Shown here: positions 1,951 to 63,895 of the stretch, one piece after another
Layout: each line of letters begins with the position of its first letter
How positions within the stretch are numbered: the first letter of the stretch is position 1
Source: Mytilus trossulus
Lineage: Eukaryota
Assembly (NCBI RefSeq): GCF_036588685.1
Contig: NC_086373.1
Location: 54,808,001-54,872,000, forward strand
Direction: 5' to 3'
DNA length: 64,000 bases
The notes under the pieces: generated by a model
What the model saw: the letters and a program-made list of their open reading frames with translations, nothing else
The model's database searches: none
Told to the model about the DNA's origin: nothing
Translations under genes and position numbers: made by a program

Positions 1951-4446
1951 AAAAAAAATAAAAACATTCTTTTATATTTTACAAATTAAAAATCAATATT
2001 TTGATATTATCCAACAAATATATTATGCAATTTTTGCTGACGGGGGCAAAATTTTTGTCAACGTGGCAAAAATATTTGCTGCTGCCACACAATATATACT
2101 ACTGTATGTATTGTTTTAAAATAGCTTTTCGTTCCGTGCATGTATGCATGAACTATTTGACACTGCACGTTCTGCAACCACCAATCTGTCAATCAATCGA
2201 TTTTATAGAAAAGATGTATCATATCTTACATCAAAACAATGTATAACGCCACCCGTTCATCTTTTTCTACAACATGATATATGTGCAGATCACACTGCTG
2301 ACATTACTAGACCAGGCCACATATACCTGAGGCTGTAGATGGGGGTTTACAGAATAGAGAATAATGAACAAAAAATAGAAAGAATAGTATCGGAAGTATT
2401 GGAACAGAATATAAACAAACAGGAACATAAATTGTACGGCTCTAATTAGAAATGATTACAGTTCAAACACAGCTGCATCATACATTAAAGTTAACGGTCA
2501 ATCAGACAGTCTGCTTAAGTTTACGAAAACAATAAATCTACAAATACTTAACACGCTAGGCCAAAGCAAATCAATCTAGGCAATTAAATACCGATCTTAG
2601 ATAAGAAATAAATGTGCAAGTTTCACCCTATGACAGTTTTCAGATAAAAAAAAAAAAAAAAGACGATTTTTAAGTTTGCTGAACATGTTGTGGCTAAAAT
2701 TATGTGCATATTCAGGACTTGAACAAAATAACAATAAATACAGTAGATATAGGTTCGTAATGGAATGTCTTTATTGACTTTGTCTTGTGTAAAAAGCTCT
2801 CTTGAAATCCCAGCGGGTTTAAGCAACTTTAAAGTAAGTGCTTTGGTACTTTTGTAGTTAATATAATTTTTTTTACTTAATTCGCCATTTATTATTTTAT
2901 AATTTACATATGAAACAATAACCCGGATAAATCATTCCAGAAACATGATAGTGCTTACATTTTATAAGAGGATAACAAAATTAGAGAATTATATTTATTT
3001 AGATTGATATCCATGATGGAGCAAAGTTTCAACCACTTTTTTATGTCCCTTTTTATCATAAGATATTCGCGTCATTATTTATATAAAGAATGATGAGGAT
3101 GACGATAAAAACGATGTCTGATGTCCAGTGGTAACTATTACAACATGCATACACCCAGAATAACAACATGATTTATGTTATTAACACGTTTTGTACCAGA
3201 AAAACTGAGTCAGATGTTTTGACGCATTTTTCAGCTGATACAAATAACTTTGTAAGAAGCTTAAGACGTGCCAAGACGCATTATTCTAACTTCAATCGTA
3301 CCAGTATTCAAATGCTTTCATTACTTATAAACGAATGTTTTCTTAACCTTCATTATTTGTTTGATAAGAGCAATGTTACATGTAATATCATGGAAAAAAA
3401 CATTGTTTTTTACGGAAAGCTGGAACAAGGAGCTAAGTCAACAGTGTTATATTCCGGACGTCAACACAAAAAAAAACAGCATGCAAATATATATATGGGG
3501 GATAAGTATACAATTTTTTACACATCAGACTGTACTAGTTATATCATAACTTTGGATACACCAAACAAGGTACTTTATATATGAGTAACAGGCAATGTAC
3601 GCCCTCTATTTTATAGAACTAATTCATAACTATTTGTTTCATTTGTATTCATCTGCCAAATGTGTGTGTTTTGCAAGGTTCAGCAGTTCTTACCCTTTCA
3701 TTTGATACATGTATTTATATAACTTACCAAAAATTATTCTGCATATAATATAGTTTGATTTAAATACGTAAGAACTACTATTTTTTTTAAATACGTACTT
3801 CTTTCCTTTTTGAACGCGCCCAAAATGGTTGGTGTAACATCTTACGAAGTCTATTAAATTTTTTGGGCAAACTATTTCGCTCTGGCTGTTGCTAGTGGTC
3901 GTCTTACACGTGCAGTGTTGTGAGATACTTTTCGTTCCACGTTGAAGGTTTAATGTGACTTACAGCAATTACAGCGCTGTTCCTTTGCTTAATTTTTTAA
4001 TGTGTTTTTTTTAATGTGGTTATATATTCATTTCTGTCACGGATTGATACCCAATATTCTTTTGTTTTTCTATGGAAAAAAATGTTCCTTTACAAAAAAA
4101 AAATATTGGTATATTCCAAACTTCGATTTTTTTTAATAATGTAAATGATTTTTAATTTTAACAAGGAGGTTATTATGAGATATTCTAACCTAACTAAACG
4201 AAAAAGAGAATTGTAATATAAAATCTTACGATTCTAAAGTTTCTTCGAACAAGATCTGTTATCATATGCTAATTACCCATATCATATTTTAATGACCACA
4301 TACTGTGGCCATCGTGATCATATAAACCCTAATAAATTATAAACATTCGAATGTAAAATTTCGCACGATAGATAATGACAAACAAACGACGGAAATTACA
4401 TAATAAATCCACAGCGTGTATCTTAATATATTTGTCAGTACATGGA

Positions 4447-4711: not shown

Positions 4712-5035
4712 AATAGATATAGGAGGATGTGGTGTGAGTGCCAATGAGACAACTCTCCATCCAAATAACAATTTAAAAAGTAAACCATTATAGGTTAAAG
4801 TACGGCCTTCAACACGGAGCCTTGGCTCACACCGAACAACAAGCTATAAAGGGCCCCAAAATTACTAGTGTAAAACCATTCAAACGGGAAAACCAACGGT
4901 CTAATCTATATAAACAAAATGAGAAACACGTATATATTACATAAACAAACGACAACTACTGTACATCAGATTCCTGACTTAGGACAGGTGCAAACATTTG
5001 CAGCGGGATTAAACGTTTTAATGGATCCAAACCTT
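4712..5035 (-). mobile_element. Naiad/Penelope-associated 3' end repeat, family B, 5'-truncated within the twister motif
   Basis: Near-identical reverse complement of about 10858-11188. Confidence 0.8.
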
Positions 5036-10619: not shown

Positions 10620-11188
10620 TGAACATTGATTGGTTAAATATTTCTCAGTGTGTTTGAATTTGTTTGTTAGCTTTTTGGTCATGAATGTTTGTCTCTGATA
10701 TTTTATTAACTATGCATTTGTATTCAGATATCGCAGATCAAATTTGTTCGTTCATTGTGTAATCATTCGTTTTTTGATTGAGTTAAGTCTGCCAATTGAT
10801 ATTTTATCGTATGTTTTTCTATGTTGTGATGTTATGCTATTGTTTCAGAAAAAGGGAGAAGGTTTGGATCCATTAAAACGTTTAATCCCGCTGCAAATGT
10901 TTGCACCTGTCCTAAGTCAGGAATCTGATGTACAGTAGTTGTCGTTTGTTTATGTAATATATACGTGTTTCTCGTTTCTCGTTTTGTTTATATAGATTAG
11001 ACCGTTGGTTTTCCCGTTTGAATGGTTTTACACTAGTAATTTTGGGGCCCTTTATAGCTTGTTATTCGGTGTGAGCCAATGCTCCGTGTTGAAGGCCGTA
11101 CTTTAACCTATAATGGTTTACTTTTTAAATTGTTATTTGGATGGAGAGTTGTCTCATTGGCACTCACACCACATCTTCCTATATCTAT
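10620..11188 (+). mobile_element. Naiad/Penelope-associated 3' end repeat, family B
   Basis: Same module order as the RT-linked family C tail: twister, GGGGCC motif, then terminal GTTGTCTCATTGGCA. Left boundary is approximate. Confidence 0.7.
10845..10928 (+). ncRNA. Twister ribozyme, type-P5 permutation (family B)
   Basis: TCAGA-AAAA-GGGA-GAAGG-TT-TGGATCCA-TTA-AAACGTTT^AA-TCCC-GC-TGCAAATGTTTGCA-CCTG-TCCTAAGT-CAGG-AA-TCTGA. P5, P2, P3 and P4 all pair. Predicted cleavage at 10883/10884. Confidence 0.8.
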
Positions 11189-14475: not shown

Positions 14476-15043
14476 AATATAAAAAAGAAGATGTTGTATG
14501 ATTGCTAATGAGACAACTATCCACAAAAGACCATAATGACACAGACATTAACAACTATAGGTCACCGTACGGCCTTCAACAATGAGCAAAGCCCATACCG
14601 CATAGTCAGATATAAAAGGCCCCGAGAAAACAATGTAAAACAATTCAAACGAGAAAACTAACGGCCTTATTTATGTAAAATAATAAACGAGAAACAAATA
14701 TGTAACACATAAACAAACGACAACCACTGAATTTACAGGCTCCTGACTTGGGACAGGCACATACATAAATAATGTTGCGGGGTTAAACATGTTAGCGGGA
14801 TCCCCCCACCCACCCACCCCTTAACCATGGACAGTGGTATAACAGTACAACATAAGAACGAACTATAAAAATCAGTTAAAAAAGGCTTAACTCATCACAT
14901 GGACAAAAATACAAGTGGACGTGGCCGGGTACTTATACATCCCGATACAAAAAGACACAATGAACAGATATGAGATTACTCGCAGTTATCATCTGACAGC
15001 TAGTTCAAAGCCACTAACAACTAATAAAAAAATCATGCATCTA
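14476..15043 (-). mobile_element. Naiad/Penelope-associated 3' end repeat, family A, with a damaged twister at 14736-14828
   Basis: Contains CCTGTCCCAAGTCAGG, AACATGTT, GGGATCCC and the GGGGCC motif. The GAGGG segment is replaced by a GGGT expansion. Confidence 0.7.
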
Positions 15044-22435: not shown

Positions 22436-23121
22436 ATTCGATACGACAAGTGCTGCTGACCGCACAATTTTTGAGCAACAGGACGGTTGCCACATGAGGA
22501 GCAGGATCTACTTACCCTTGCGGAGCACTTGAGATCGCCCGCAGTATTTGGTCGAGTTCGTGTTTTACTCGGTCTTTAGTTTTCTATGTTGTTTCTTGTG
22601 TACTATTATTTGTCTGTTTCTCTTTTCTATTTTTAGCCATAGCGTTGTCAGTTTATTTTCGATTGGTGAGTTTGACTGTTCCTCTGGTATATTTCGCCCC
22701 TCTTTTATAGTAACTATCCGGCTCATGGTATCATTTCTTCTGAATGTTACATACCTTTAATAATATGCTGATTCAAAATCAAATATCAAAAACATATAAT
22801 TAAGCTTATGGAGGAATGGTTTGAAAAATGTTTGATATAAAATAAACAGGAAATATTGGTATAACTTTTACTAGGAAATAAAATTGAGAATGGAAATGGG
22901 GAATGTGTCGGAGAGACAACAACCCGACCAAATAAAAAAAAAAACAACAGCAGAAGGTCACCAACAGGTCTTCAATGTAGCGAGAAATTCCCGCACCCGG
23001 AGGCGTCCTTCAGCTGGCCCCTAAACAAACATATACTAGTTCAGTGATAATGAACGCCATACTAATTTCCAAATTGTACACAAGAAACTAATATAAAAAT
23101 AATACAAGACTAACAAAGGCC

Positions 23122-23204
23122 AGAGGCTCCTGACTTGGGACAGGCGCAAAAATGCGGCGGGGTTAAACATGTTTGTGAGATCTCAACCCTCCCCCTATAC
23201 CTCT
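23122..23204 (-). ncRNA. Twister ribozyme, type-P5 permutation (family C), ~320 nt downstream of the RT stop
   Basis: AGAGGT-ATA-GGGG-GAGGG-TT-GAGATCTC-AC-AAACATGTTT^AA-CCCC-GC-CGCATTTTTGCG-CCTG-TCCCAAGT-CAGG-A-GCCTCT. Predicted cleavage at 23165/23164. Confidence 0.82.
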
Positions 23205-23520
23205 AACCAATGTAGAAAAGTAAACGCATGACAATACGCACATTAAAATTCAGTTCAAGAGAAGTCCGAGTCTGATGTCAGAAGATGTAACCAAAGAAAA
23301 TAAACAAAATGATAATAATACATAAATAACAACAGACTACTAGCAGTTAACTGACATGCCAGCTCCAGACTTCAATTACACTGACTGACTGATTATGATT
23401 TCATCATATGAACATCAGGCACAATCCTTCCCGTTAGGGGTTTAGTATCATACCATCATAACATATATGAGAAGAACATAACCCGTGTCATGCCAACAAC
23501 TGTTTTTAGAATAAATGTGT

Positions 23521-24152
23521 TTAGTTTCGACGCAAAGACCTTATCAGTGACTCAATATTAACGCCAAAATATGCAATCTTTAATGACTTGACAACATTAT
23601 CGTAAGTATATCCCTTCTTAATACGTCTATTCAAAGGTTTTGTAAGTTTCTGAGGTGAATACTGACACCTTTGTGCTTTATAAAGAATATTTCCATAAAA
23701 AAATGGATGTGAAATACCTGAACGTATAAGAAGTCTGCATGTTGAGCTATATTTACGAATGATGTCTTTATACCGATAATAAAATTTAGTAAATGTTTTG
23801 ACTAGTTTGTGATATCGAAAACCCTGGTGTAATAATTTTTCAGTAATACATAAATTTCTCTCGTTAAAATCTAAAACATTGTTACATGCACGAGCAAATC
23901 GTACAAGTTGAGATATATAAACACCGTAAGATGGTGACAAGGGAACGTCACCATCTAAAAACGGATAATTAACGATAGGAAATGAAAAATCATCCCTTTT
24001 ATCATAAATTTTAGTATTCAGCTTTCCGTTAGTGATATAGATATCAAGATCGAGGAAAGGGCAGTGGTCATTGTTAGTATTAGCTTTATTTAAAGTAAGT
24101 TCAGCAGGATAAATTTCATTAATATACATACTGAAGTCGTCATTATTGAGAG
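23521..24152 (-). pseudogene. Penelope-like reverse transcriptase C-terminal fragment (~210 aa, open)
   Basis: RT-like sequence begins at LNNDDFSMY, just after where the YIDD motif should be. The upstream part of the ORF-track entry is flanking DNA. Confidence 0.85.
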
Positions 24153-39029: not shown

Positions 39030-39195
39030 NNNNNNNNNNNNNNNNNNNNNNNNNNNNNNNNNNNNNNNNNNNNNNNNNNNNNNNNNNNNNNNNNNNNNNN
39101 NNNNNNNNNNNNNNNNNNNNNNNNNNNNNNNNNNNNNNNNNNNNNNNNNNNNNNNNNNNNNNNNNNNNNNNNNNNNNNNNNNNNNNNNNNNNNNN
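39030..39195. other. Assembly gap (166 N)
   Basis: Run of n. Confidence 1.
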
Positions 39196-52835: not shown

Positions 52836-52879
52836 GCGACACTGATGAGTCTTATTTAGACGGAACGCGCGTCTGAGGT
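52836..52879 (+). ncRNA. Minimal type I hammerhead ribozyme, core mutated (GAAA to GGAA), in a retrozyme-like insert
   Basis: CTGATGA-GTCT-TATTT-AGAC-GGAA-CGCGCG-TC. Confidence 0.7.
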
Positions 52880-52930: not shown

Positions 52931-53341
52931 AATAAAATTGAGAATGGAAATGGGGAATATGTCAAAGAGACAACAACCCGACCAAATAAAAAAAAAACAG
53001 CAGAAGGTCACCAACAGGTCTTCAATGTAGCGAGAAATTCCTGCACCCGGAGGCGTCCTTCAGCTGGCCCCTAAACAAATATATACTAGTTCAGTGATAA
53101 TGAACGCCATACTAATTTCCAAATTGTACACAATAAACTAAAATTAAAATAATACAAGACTAACAAAGGCCAGAGGCTCCTGACTTGGGACAGGCGCAAA
53201 AATGCGGCGGGGTTAAACATTTTTGTGAGATCTCAACCCTCCCCCTATACCTCTAACCAATGTAGAAAAGTAAACGCATAACAATATGCACATTAAAATT
53301 CAGTTCAAGAGAAGTCCGAGTCTGATGTCAAAAGATGTAAC
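52931..53341 (-). mobile_element. Family C Naiad 3' end, near-identical to 22877-23291
   Basis: Direct sequence match with only a few differences. Confidence 0.88.
53172..53254 (-). ncRNA. Twister ribozyme, type-P5 (family C, second copy)
   Basis: Same as 23122-23204 except for one substitution in the second palindrome. Confidence 0.78.
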
Positions 53342-54435: not shown

Positions 54436-54479
54436 GCGCTAGACGCGCGTTTCGTCTACAAAAGACTCATCAGTGACGC
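54436..54479 (-). ncRNA. Minimal type I hammerhead ribozyme with intact core, in a retrozyme-like insert (~54399-54591)
   Basis: GCGTCA-CTGATGA-GTCT-TTTGT-AGAC-GAAA-CGCGCG-TC^TAGCGC, with palindromic stem III. The insert splits the hairpin at 54304-54620. Confidence 0.85.
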
Positions 54480-56361: not shown

Positions 56362-56793
56362 CTATAAGAAATAGAAAGATGAACTATATACCAATTCTTC
56401 CTATATTTATATACAATATAATTGTTGTTAATTTTTAAATGTAAGCCAAGACATAAAGCAGACTTAATTTTATAAGTGGCATCGTGTATTTACAGTCTGA
56501 TGGGGCAGATATGTTCAACAAAGTGATGATGGCATCATCTTTATATAACTGTACTTAAAGTAAAAGGGTATTGGTAGCTTCTTTTCATCCTCCAAGACGT
56601 CTGCCTAATATGAATAAAGAAACAAGAAGAATGTGCCATCTGATTCTCATAAACGTAAAATGTAAAGTTTGTGTTGAATAATCTTTTCCCAACGTAACAA
56701 ATATCTTATCAATCAAGAAATCAAGCATCTTGAAATCTGAGTCTTTAATAATAATAAAAACGATGGACTTACGGTCACGGATTTGATGAGAAT

Positions 56794-56885
56794 GTCATTA
56801 AAGTGAGAGGGTTAGCGCTATAAAACTAGGTTTAATCCACCATTTTCTACATTTGAAAATGCCTCTACCAAGTCAGGAATATGAC
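56794..56885 (+). ncRNA. Twister-like motif, type-P5, divergent family E (P4 mismatch in this copy)
   Basis: GTCAT-TAAA-GTGA-GAGGG-T-TAGCGCTA-TA-AAACTAGGTTT^AA-TCC-AC-CATTTTCTACATTTGAAAATG-CCTC-TACCAAGT-CAGG-AAT-ATGAC. Confidence 0.6.
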
Positions 56886-57281
56886 AGTTCTTGTCCATTC
56901 GTTTTGATGAGTTTTGTTATTTGATTTTGCCATATGATAATGGACTTTCCGAATTGATTTTCCTCTAAGTTCAGTATTTTTGTGATTTTACTTTTGACAT
57001 AAAGTTTATTATCTCCGTGTCACTTGTAGTCTCTGGTTAAGTGTTGTCTTATTGGCTATTATATTATTTTGCTATTTCTACATTAAAAAAGTTAAACCAT
57101 AATGAGCATGCAAATAACTTGCACTTTGAATTAACTAACCATCGAAATTTCTCACGATATAGTAAAAGAACCATTTTTTGTTGTTAAATATAAATCGGAG
57201 CTCAAGTCAAATTATGCCATTGAAATTGTTTAAAATTCTTAATAATTTATACATTCGTATGACACCTTAATTGAACACATA

Positions 57282-62913: not shown

Positions 62914-63698
62914 TGTCAACAGATGGTTATTATAATTCAGTCATTTCCTATCGGTCATTTGCCAAATGGAATTTTATATTTTTATGCATTAGAAAAAAAA
63001 CCTGTTCTGTACATATAATTATATAAAAGTTGGGGAAATTGTCGTTCGAAGAAATTAAACCCAGCGTAAAAAAGTTGTATGACGCATGTAATTTCCATAT
63101 TCATCTCATCTTATAAATTTAAGGAAAAAAAACTTAATCATGACGAAAGACTGAAACATGTTAAACAATCTTTCTCTATTTTATACTTTCAAGAAATCAT
63201 TCGACTGATCTATTTATCTAATATAGCTATTTTTGTCATAATCTGTATACATGTATAAAATGCAACATACACCATGTCATTAAAAGATCAATTTACTGGA
63301 TTGATTCAATTGATAAAGGCATCATTCAATTTAATTAAAGGGGTTCAATCCTTGATAGCGGGTTAATATTTAAATGTGTTCATTTTAGGTATAGTTATCT
63401 AGTGCAATAATGATAAAAAGACGAGGTTAAAAATAAAAATCAAGCATTTGATATGTAGAGAGTTGATTATCAAAGCGTTATTTTACAACTGTACCATGGC
63501 AATCATTTTTATATGGTTAATAGCTGTTTGCTGAGAATTATTTCACAAACAACAGTAGTACACTAACGAGATGAGCTGAAAGAAACTTGACATTTCATAT
63601 CCCAGTTCCTATCTCAACTTTCTTTTTAATCCAGATCAGTCTTGAAAATTACAGGCAACACTACGGAAGCCGATAAGGGCCGTTCAAAAAAAATATTT

Positions 63699-63895
63699 TA
63701 TGTCGTTGTTACGACATAGCATGTGGTAATTTCGACATAACATGTCGTTATTACGACATCATTATGTCGTAATTTCGACATAACATGTCGTTATAACGAC
63801 ATCGCTATGTCGTAATTTCGACATATCATGTCGTAATAACGACATCACTATGTCGTTTTAACGACATAGCTATGTCGTAATAACGACATCGCTAT
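63699..63895. repeat. Tandem array of 9 palindromic 21-22-bp units (ATGTCGT...ACGACAT)
   Basis: Units read directly. Probably the internal repeat of a MITE. Confidence 0.85.

Follow-up and report, generated by a model that had tools for sequence, protein, structure and literature searches.

Two covarying palindromes in place of helix P1 in a putative type-P5 twister of Naiad-type Penelope-like elements: a candidate module for pairing between copies

The minus strand of the 64-kb window (the whole stretch of DNA analysed here) carries, from 23208 to 23118, a putative ribozyme whose elements follow the order of the circularly permuted (type-P5) twister. At the normal position of helix P1 there are instead two self-complementary words, palindrome 1 (pal1) and palindrome 2 (pal2). 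Their sequence changes between families and their symmetry is kept; we somewhat favour the reading that the two words constitute an RNA–RNA pairing module. A first-pass annotation had placed two such words at 23165-23184. They were found exactly there, on the minus strand, the interval comprising both words and the linker AC. The parts of the ribozyme, all on the minus strand, are the following.

23208-23118, minus: whole type-P5 twister fold (from fold, covariation and a match to Rfam RF02684 below cut-off)
23208-23200 with 23126-23118, minus: P5; the 5′ strand is GGUUAGAGG, followed by UAUA
23195-23192 with 23162-23159, minus: P2, GGGG / CCCC; the CCCC strand is followed by GCC
23191-23187, minus: GAGGG, the T1 strand of the twister fold
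23186-23185, minus: UU, called invariant, between the T1 strand and pal1
23184-23177, minus: pal1 of family C, GAGAUCUC, a hypervariable self-complementary word starting 2 nt after GAGGG
23176-23175, minus: linker AC between pal1 and pal2
23174-23165, minus: pal2 of family C, AAACAUGUUU, ending at U-1 of the predicted cleavage site
between U23165 and A23164, minus: cleavage site predicted from the twister fold
23164-23163, minus: A+1 and A+2, directly after the scissile bond
23155-23146, minus: P3, a short hairpin of the twister fold
23144-23141 with 23132-23129, minus: P4, CCUG / CAGG, closing the loop UCCCAAGU
23140-23133, minus: P4 loop UCCCAAGU of the twister fold

Structure of the ribozyme

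The minimum-free-energy fold of the ribozyme returns P2 to P5. On a 211-nt slice, Rfam RF02684 (Twister-P5) matches 23129-23195 with 23.1 bits (E 0.005), which is below the gathering cut-off of 37.6 bits, and the 21-nt P1 region appears as an insertion in the match. At gathering thresholds Rfam gave no match across the 64-kb window. We did not observe any Twister Rfam match at E ≤ 1 in 20 metagenome loci.

The type-P5 twister is taken here as described by Roth et al. 2014, in the summary given by the review PMC5408937. The Naiad motif shares with it the order P5, A-rich joiner, P2, GAGGG, P1 region, U-1 and AA on either side of the scissile bond, P2, GC, P3, P4 and P5; it also shares the P4 loop YCCCAAGY, both pseudoknots and the conserved AAG, AA and GAGG letters. 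It differs in having UU and two tandem palindromes instead of a P1 hairpin, in scoring 23 bits against the Rfam cut-off, and in that its activity is putative.

Comparison of families bears on each helix of the fold. In a 14-family alignment (A3) the named structure is 93.6% paired with a covariation of 0.487 compared to 0.129 for shuffles, and none of 500 shuffles scored as high; sliding the partner columns by one to three positions abolishes the signal. A covariance-model alignment of 32 distinct sequences gave 91.1% pairing and a covariation of 0.407 (shuffled, 0.120). Both P2 (83-89% paired) and P4 (96-99% paired) contain two pairs that are changed on both sides, and P2 takes the forms CCCC/GGGG, UCCC/GGGA, ACAC/GUGU and GCCC/GGGC in different families. 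The T1 pseudoknot, formed by the GAGGG strand with the CCC of the P4 loop, is paired in 91-98% of cells and occurs in five compensating states (GGG/CCC, AGG/CCU, GGU/ACC, AGA/UCU and GGA/UCC). The T2 pseudoknot, in which the two bases following P2 pair with the G of the AAG-N loop and its neighbour, is seen as AC or GC with GU, GC with GC and CC with GG; in the 32-sequence alignment its pair 93/153 is CG in 12, AU in 8, GU in 5 and GC in 1, and pair 94/152 is CG in 29. The sequence of P5 is wholly different in each family and its complementarity is always kept. The invariant columns of the 14-family alignment are A+1, A+2, the AAG of loop 4 and the G-A-G of the 3′ strand, and these letters agree with the Rfam Twister-P5 consensus. 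Since P2, P4, P5 and both pseudoknots covary, the type-P5 twister fold is supported. Judged from its sequence the motif is a twister in every structural feature of the class apart from the P1 stem next to the cleavage site, which is absent, and the Rfam cut-off; its catalysis is putative.

Seven metagenome loci (L077, L084, L089, L091, L094, L097 and L101 in alignment A4) have GAGG-UU in place of GAGGG-UU and the P4 loop GUUCCAAGG; the second pair of P2 in this group is constant and non-standard (A or U opposite C). The group may be a distinct sub-variant of the twister fold. A genome search with RF02684, in which 79 of 26,711 candidates were scored, returned three other twister-like sites, the Naiad twister family not being among them. 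These are L037 (G000 C7:26314545-26314595, minus), L035 (C9:64010332-64010376, minus) and L036 (1517-1656). They have a canonical core (CCGGUCCCAAGCCCGG, AUAAA), with an ordinary P1 (GACUU/AAGUC) in L037, so the genome also contains conventional type-P1-like twisters in another context.

Other copies in the window

Nine twister copies or remnants of four families were located in the window, as solo 5′-truncated insertions. Besides the family C copy above, the palindromes are seen at these positions.

5011-5029, minus: family B copy with the same two palindromes as the copy at 10865, to which it is inverted (UGGAUCCA and AAACGUUU)
10865-10883, plus: family B copy, UGGAUCCA, linker UUA, AAACGUUU (by sequence)
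14786-14804, minus: family A copy, GGGAUCCC, linker GCU, AACAUGUU; its GAGGG strand is decayed to a G/U-rich run
53215-53234, minus: second family C copy, pal1 intact (53234-53227), pal2 AAAAAUGUUU (53224-53215) with one C-to-A change
56813-56833, plus: family E copy, UAGCGCUA, then a decayed AAACUAGGUUU (family norm AACC-A-GGUU)

Both P2 (GGGA/UCCC) and T1 (AGG/CCU) of the family B copy at 10865-10883 are compensatory relative to family C. Intact copies of family A exist elsewhere in the genome. The second word of family E had been described as imperfect, as is indeed the case for AAACUAGGUUU at 56823-56833. The family B tails at 4713-5035 and 10859-11188 are inverted, about 5.8 kb apart and 98-99% complementary; they could be the inverted-copy structure of a Penelope-like element, or a captured pair. 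The similarity of the E-type family (56777-56995, plus) to its other copies spans about 220 nt only. Rather than a full element that was truncated, this family may represent a short non-autonomous element derived from a Naiad tail.

Two further stretches of the window are recorded here. Positions 63698-63890 hold dense direct and inverted ACGACAT-type repeats. Several miRNA models, from plants and animals, match these repeats below threshold on both strands; the matches most likely reflect a hairpin of repeats rather than a miRNA gene. Positions 39030-39195 are 166 N, an assembly gap or a masked stretch.

Host element

The family C ribozyme lies in a dispersed repeat, of which the window copy has these features.

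22876-24152, minus: 5′-truncated copy of a Naiad-type Penelope-like element, about 1.28 kb; contains the ribozyme and the C-terminal portion of the ORF and ends sharply on the 3′ side
23405-23469, minus: SECIS-like hairpin (SECIS_1, 32.3 bits) between the ORF and the ribozyme

Copies of the repeat end sharply on the 3′ side and are truncated at random points on the 5′ side; identity to the window copy is 97-98% for the best 40 of at least 1,635 candidate matches. In longer copies a single ORF encodes a GIY-YIG motif at its N terminus and then a reverse transcriptase (RT; RYLDD), and it includes an in-frame TGA (translation of locus L033). Locus L031 also has, upstream, a partial tandem repeat of its final 540 nt, which constitutes a pseudo-LTR. 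Homologues numbered 4353 at E ≤ 1e-10. Pfam returned no RT or GIY-YIG match for the pieces of the ORF, and the assignment was made from the translated motifs together with the description of Naiads by Craig et al. 2021 (PMC8557442), who report N-terminal GIY-YIG then RT, a DKA-type motif, a pseudo-LTR and huge copy numbers in bivalves. By these motifs the host is a Naiad-type Penelope-like element. It resembles the published clade in ORF layout, DKA-type motif, pseudo-LTR, copy number and the combination of an in-frame UGA with a SECIS-like element. According to the same paper canonical hammerheads are absent from Naiads, and twisters are nowhere mentioned in it (PMC8557442). In the literature searched we found no paper linking twisters with Naiads or with bivalve retrotransposons.

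SECIS_1-like hairpins, which score 27-33 bits and so fall just short of the cut-off of 35, are a recurrent feature of the interval from the ORF end to the twister: at 23405-23469 (minus) in the window, at L119 945-1005, L094 3720-3786 and L089 4325-4387, and in five more loci. The in-frame TGA at L033 5884 is located where related elements would have Cys. These elements resemble the selenoprotein-type Naiads reported from clams and spiders.

The ribozyme lies about 290 nt from the 3′ end of the element. Exact core matches in the genome number 12,533 for families A, B and C together (reversed-pattern control, 0), the family B pattern giving 3,762 (control, 0), and 10,183 for the E-type pattern (control, 4); the genome total exceeds 22,000. 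In full-length elements the twister occurs twice in the same sense, with about 3-4 kb between the copies: L031 has them at about 4625 and 7667, and L077 at 1-96 and 4168-4277. Upstream copies are present in L077, L096 and L123. The tandem pseudo-LTR setting suggested by the first-pass annotation thus exists in full-length L031 and L077, where the copies are paired, and does not extend to the solo, 5′-truncated copies of the window.

Genomic copies cross the predicted cleavage site and end 288 nt downstream of it, as does the window copy, so the RNA that served as template was uncut. Copies beginning exactly at A+1 are not enriched in the genome (7, compared to 45 at a control breakpoint 9 nt downstream), and several of these 7 resemble internal deletions. 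The uncut template and the lack of enrichment at A+1 both agree with a ribozyme whose monomer lacks constitutive activity. Eleven of the 45 copies that break 9 nt past the cleavage site have CATG joined directly to the P3 hairpin, which looks like a deletion subfamily devoid of the scissile site and of one P2 strand.

Sequence and symmetry of the palindromes

Pal1 is GAGAUCUC in family C and GGGAUCCC in family A. Family B has UGGAUCCA, UGGGCCCA or UGGUACCA, in which the central dinucleotide alone differs (AU, GC, UA), the E-type family has UAGCGCUA, UAGCUAGCUA or UGGCAUGCCA, and a rare family has AAGCGCUU. Among the first 100 family B matches listed, a hand count gave about 43 of UGGAUCCA, about 43 of UGGGCCCA and 5 of UGGUACCA; the same 100 included 9 non-palindromic forms, each seen once or twice, and intermediates between the alleles were scarce (TGGGTCCA twice, TGGACCCA once). 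The three alleles sit in elements that are otherwise 96-99% identical. Among the matches listed, all high-copy pal1 alleles are perfect palindromes and broken forms occur once or twice only.

The comparison was extended to marine metagenome contigs. A scan with a Naiad RT alignment yielded 80 loci of 38-99% identity, and a covariance model built from P2 and P4 alone gave 37 twister-like matches among them. All but one weak match lie on the ORF strand, either downstream of the ORF or in the upstream pseudo-LTR. The layout is the same in every metagenome family: GAGGN, U or UU, a perfect 8-10 nt palindrome, 2-4 nt, a second palindrome, and then (U) and AA at the scissile bond. The pal1 alleles found there are GAGCGCUC, GCAGCUGC, GAGUACUC, ACGCGCGU, GGGGCCCC, CGGGCCCG, GGGCGCCC, GUGCGCAC, GGUGCACC, GGUGCGCACC, GUAGCGCUAC and GGCAUGCC. 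With those of this genome about 20 alleles, each a perfect palindrome of 8-10 nt, are known from about 27 element families.

Pal1 is the strongest covarying helix of the whole motif in the 14-family alignment. All four of its pairs are changed on both sides and 98% of its cells are paired; its central pair is AU in 7, CG in 2, GC in 2 and UA in 2, and the eight distinct central tetramers are all palindromic. A perfect palindrome of at least 8 nt occurs at the same position in 28 of 29 distinct P1 segments from this genome and the metagenome contigs. That symmetry persists while sequence changes, as had been proposed for families A, B, C and E, is borne out by these two results. Two such palindromes arise in 0-0.4% of per-family shuffles in most families. 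The start of pal1 is fixed at 2 nt past the T1 strand, after UU. Predicted self-duplexes of the pal1 alleles have energies of -12 to -18 kcal/mol compared to a mean of -3.9 kcal/mol for cross-allele pairs from this genome, hence the alleles are largely orthogonal.

Pal2 is semi-conserved and is found as AAACAUGUUU, AAACGUUU, AAACUAGUUU, AACCGGUU or AAACCGGUUU, as the odd-centred forms AACC-A-GGUU, AAGUC-A-GACUU and AAUC-U-GAUU, and as AAAC-UG-GUUU with a G.U centre. Its third pair shows one compensating change from A-U to C-G, and it ends at U-1 or U-2, that is, at the scissile bond or one base before it. Given the odd or G.U centres in several families, pal2 is less cleanly a duplex than pal1. 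The family specificity claimed by the first-pass annotation would accordingly be due to pal1 and not to pal2, which is common to several families. Two further ideas on pal2 were tried and rejected. Extension of its pairing over the scissile bond to A+1/A+2 is possible in 5 of about 27 families, approximately what a random linker base would give; a p53-type half-site fits AAACATGTTT and not the other alleles.

The statement that there is no good P1 within one molecule agrees with folding. As a monomer the P1 segment has a minimum free energy of 0.0 in seven of the nine families from this genome; the mean for 27 families is -1.2 kcal/mol, no better than that of shuffles. Energies this close to 0 kcal/mol mean that one molecule by itself forms no P1. 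Taken with the covariation, the sequences suggest that the palindromes probably pair as RNA between copies.

Proposed mechanism

In the mechanism we propose, ribozyme copies of the same family would pair, pal1 with pal1 and pal2 with pal2. The partners could lie on two transcripts, or they could be the pseudo-LTR copies at the upstream and downstream positions of a single tandem transcript; as each full-length element has two same-sense twisters, a tandem transcript carries both partners. Pairing would supply in trans the helix adjoining the cleavage site, pal1 serving as a hypervariable, family-specific “barcode” and semi-conserved pal2 abutting U-1. A scissile bond would adjoin each end of the pal2–pal2 helix, the polarity being that of an ordinary P1, and the pal1 strands would each leave their own core and return along this helix, antiparallel, and could pair beside it. 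Formation of both duplexes at once would give a crossed (pseudoknot-like) topology, which RNAcofold cannot represent and which was argued on paper. The pairing would couple the two ribozymes and gate or coordinate cleavage, and single-copy RNAs would stay intact through the 3′ tail, which has to be copied by the reverse transcriptase.

The strictest form of this proposal is a dimer-gated twister, cutting only when same-family copies meet via pal1 and share a pal2 helix; we regard it as tentative and rather doubtful. Trimming to unit length would then be confined to tandem transcripts with two pseudo-LTRs, whose two ends might also be kept together and ligated into a circle. RNAs with a single copy would remain whole as templates for reverse transcription, and rapid turnover of the alleles would prevent cross-reaction between families.

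The main objection is that P1, although phylogenetically conserved, can be dispensed with in twister cleavage (PMC5408937), and that imperfections in P1 caused no loss of activity in more than 1000 assayed twisters (PMC11662667). Because P1 is dispensable in the twisters studied, the fold does not structurally require a dimer and a monomer with an open 22-nt loop could cleave well. Pairing between two copies is likely. That cleavage depends on such pairing is a weaker suggestion, with the balance against it, and the “obligate dimer” of the first-pass annotation, which the structure does not demand, we think rather unlikely.

The closest parallel is with the minimal hammerheads of Penelope-like elements, whose palindromic helix III allows weak cleavage, and only as a dimer, in the accounts given by PMC4209133 and PMC6765202 (the latter citing Lunse et al. 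2017 for the dimer-acting form). The window itself contains hammerhead matches.

54436-54479, minus: type I hammerhead, 29.5 bits (E 1.7e-05 on the slice), its helix III a loop-less 8-nt palindrome, ACGCGCGU
52840-52875, plus: weaker hammerhead match

By its sequence the first of these is of the Penelope-type, dimer-acting form, and its 8-nt palindromic helix III bears out the parallel with the hammerhead system that had been drawn. The two ribozymes share a host superfamily, a location in the pseudo-LTR or 3′ tail and two copies per tandem, and in both the helix by the scissile bond is reduced to a highly variable palindrome that can pair only between copies. The Naiad twister thus has two features of the dimer type, a palindromic cleavage-adjacent region and two same-sense copies per element. 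The hammerhead is of another ribozyme class and has one palindrome, compared to two in the Naiad twister. The hammerhead cannot adopt its active fold without helix III, but the twisters that have been studied can do without P1, so a requirement for a dimer does not follow from structure in the present case.

Twister-class ribozymes are also known from another non-LTR retroelement: T-variant twisters are present at the 5′ end of Perere-3 (RTE-clade) in Schistosoma mansoni (PMC8501958). These are type P1, sit at the very 5′ end and act as monomers, with a P1 that comes partly from the target-site duplication and a cleavage that sets the 5′ end of the element. In contrast the Naiad twister lies inside the 3′ tail, and copies starting at its cleavage site are not enriched.

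Alternative explanations

The main rival is linkage of RNA dimers in a non-catalytic role, in which the palindromes would dimerise Naiad RNAs like a retroviral dimer initiation site (DIS), unrelated to catalysis. The linkage would serve co-packaging, or template switching that builds the pseudo-LTR tandems; the P1 loop would host the palindromes as it tolerates any sequence, and the twister would act (or not) as a monomer. The DIS of HIV-1 is a short perfect palindrome with alternative self-complementary alleles (GCGCGC and GUGCAC) that discriminate between lineages, and the Naiad palindromes show a like allelism in which each allele keeps its self-complementarity. The DIS occupies a hairpin loop close to the 5′ end, and its pairing begins with a kissing complex; the Naiad palindromes lie close to the 3′ end, within a ribozyme, in a segment that is unstructured. 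Linkage would explain the same covariation evidence. It is also consistent with the dispensability of P1 for cleavage (PMC5408937, PMC11662667) and with the partly tandem and inverted arrangements that Penelope-like elements typically show (PMC8557442; L031). A mere linkage site, however, needs no registry with the active site, and that of pal1 and pal2 is fixed; moreover the hammerheads of Penelope-like elements also have a cleavage-adjacent palindrome, which there affects cleavage. We consider linkage alone to be unlikely.

The palindromes are equally symmetric in DNA. They could therefore be sites for dimeric proteins, or hot spots or by-products of template switching kept by quasi-palindrome correction, at the level of DNA or cDNA. 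Template switching corrects quasi-palindromes, so compensatory changes can arise by mutation, both in one step, and part of the symmetry may then not reflect selection on RNA; the rarity of intermediates between the family B alleles noted above is in keeping with this. Several observations nevertheless favour pairing at the RNA level. The palindromes keep a fixed position relative to ribozyme landmarks, in every case on the ORF strand. Where a palindrome is imperfect, the deviation reads as G.U on the sense strand (AAAC-UG-GUUU in L102 and L084). About 20 unrelated sequences at one fixed place are unlike a site for a sequence-specific protein, and the occurrence of the B alleles within nearly identical elements makes a co-evolving protein unlikely. 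Mutation alone would leave unexplained why two palindromes are kept across families of 40-50% RT identity. Symmetry of this origin is, in our view, distinctly improbable.

Still less probable, and by a long way, are two small intramolecular hairpins, or a mini-P1 hairpin formed by pal2, in a monomeric ribozyme. The outer pairs of both words would covary in such hairpins too, and the variable length of the pal2 centre (0, 1 or 2 nt) is loop-like. Loops of 0-2 nt are, however, impossible, and an 8-nt palindrome with a tetraloop keeps two or three pairs and thus cannot close on itself; the predicted minimum free energies are 0 to -3 kcal/mol, no better than for shuffles. A loop would also not constrain the central pair and tetramer of pal1, which covary; this excludes a hairpin loop and indicates pairing between two copies. 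Two readings of the symmetry remain: either two copies form a duplex, or the symmetry belongs to the DNA. A separate candidate is a hairpin in cis in which the GGUU that follows the T1 strand pairs with the 5′ half of pal2, leaving pal1 in a DIS-like loop. This hairpin can be drawn in many families (3-5 bp) and fails in L102; it lacks predicted stability and was rejected.

Functionless chance palindromes in decaying repeats would account for the broken symmetry of single decayed copies (53215-53224; family E at 56823-56833), but the chance of this is negligible given the shuffles, the covariation statistics, the conservation across about 27 families from several sources and the perfect symmetry of every high-copy allele among the matches listed.

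Conclusions

Naiads are the most abundant Penelope-like elements in bivalves and have been described as a ribozyme-free clade; a twister in their tail fills this gap. The palindromic P1 region in turn brings within reach of tests on small RNAs an old question, namely why Penelope-like elements keep ribozymes in tandem repeats and depend on the tandem layout. The approximately 20 natural palindrome alleles are a ready set of orthogonal pairing tags for RNA engineering. Should the dimer reading be true, two unrelated ribozyme folds in one retroelement superfamily would have converged on a cleavage-adjacent helix formed from copy to copy, and a dispensable part of the twister would have been turned into a control element with lineage-specific recognition. 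If cleavage were in addition dimer-gated, this would be the first natural twister acting as a dimer, having arisen independently of the dimeric hammerheads of Penelope-like elements and following the same logic.
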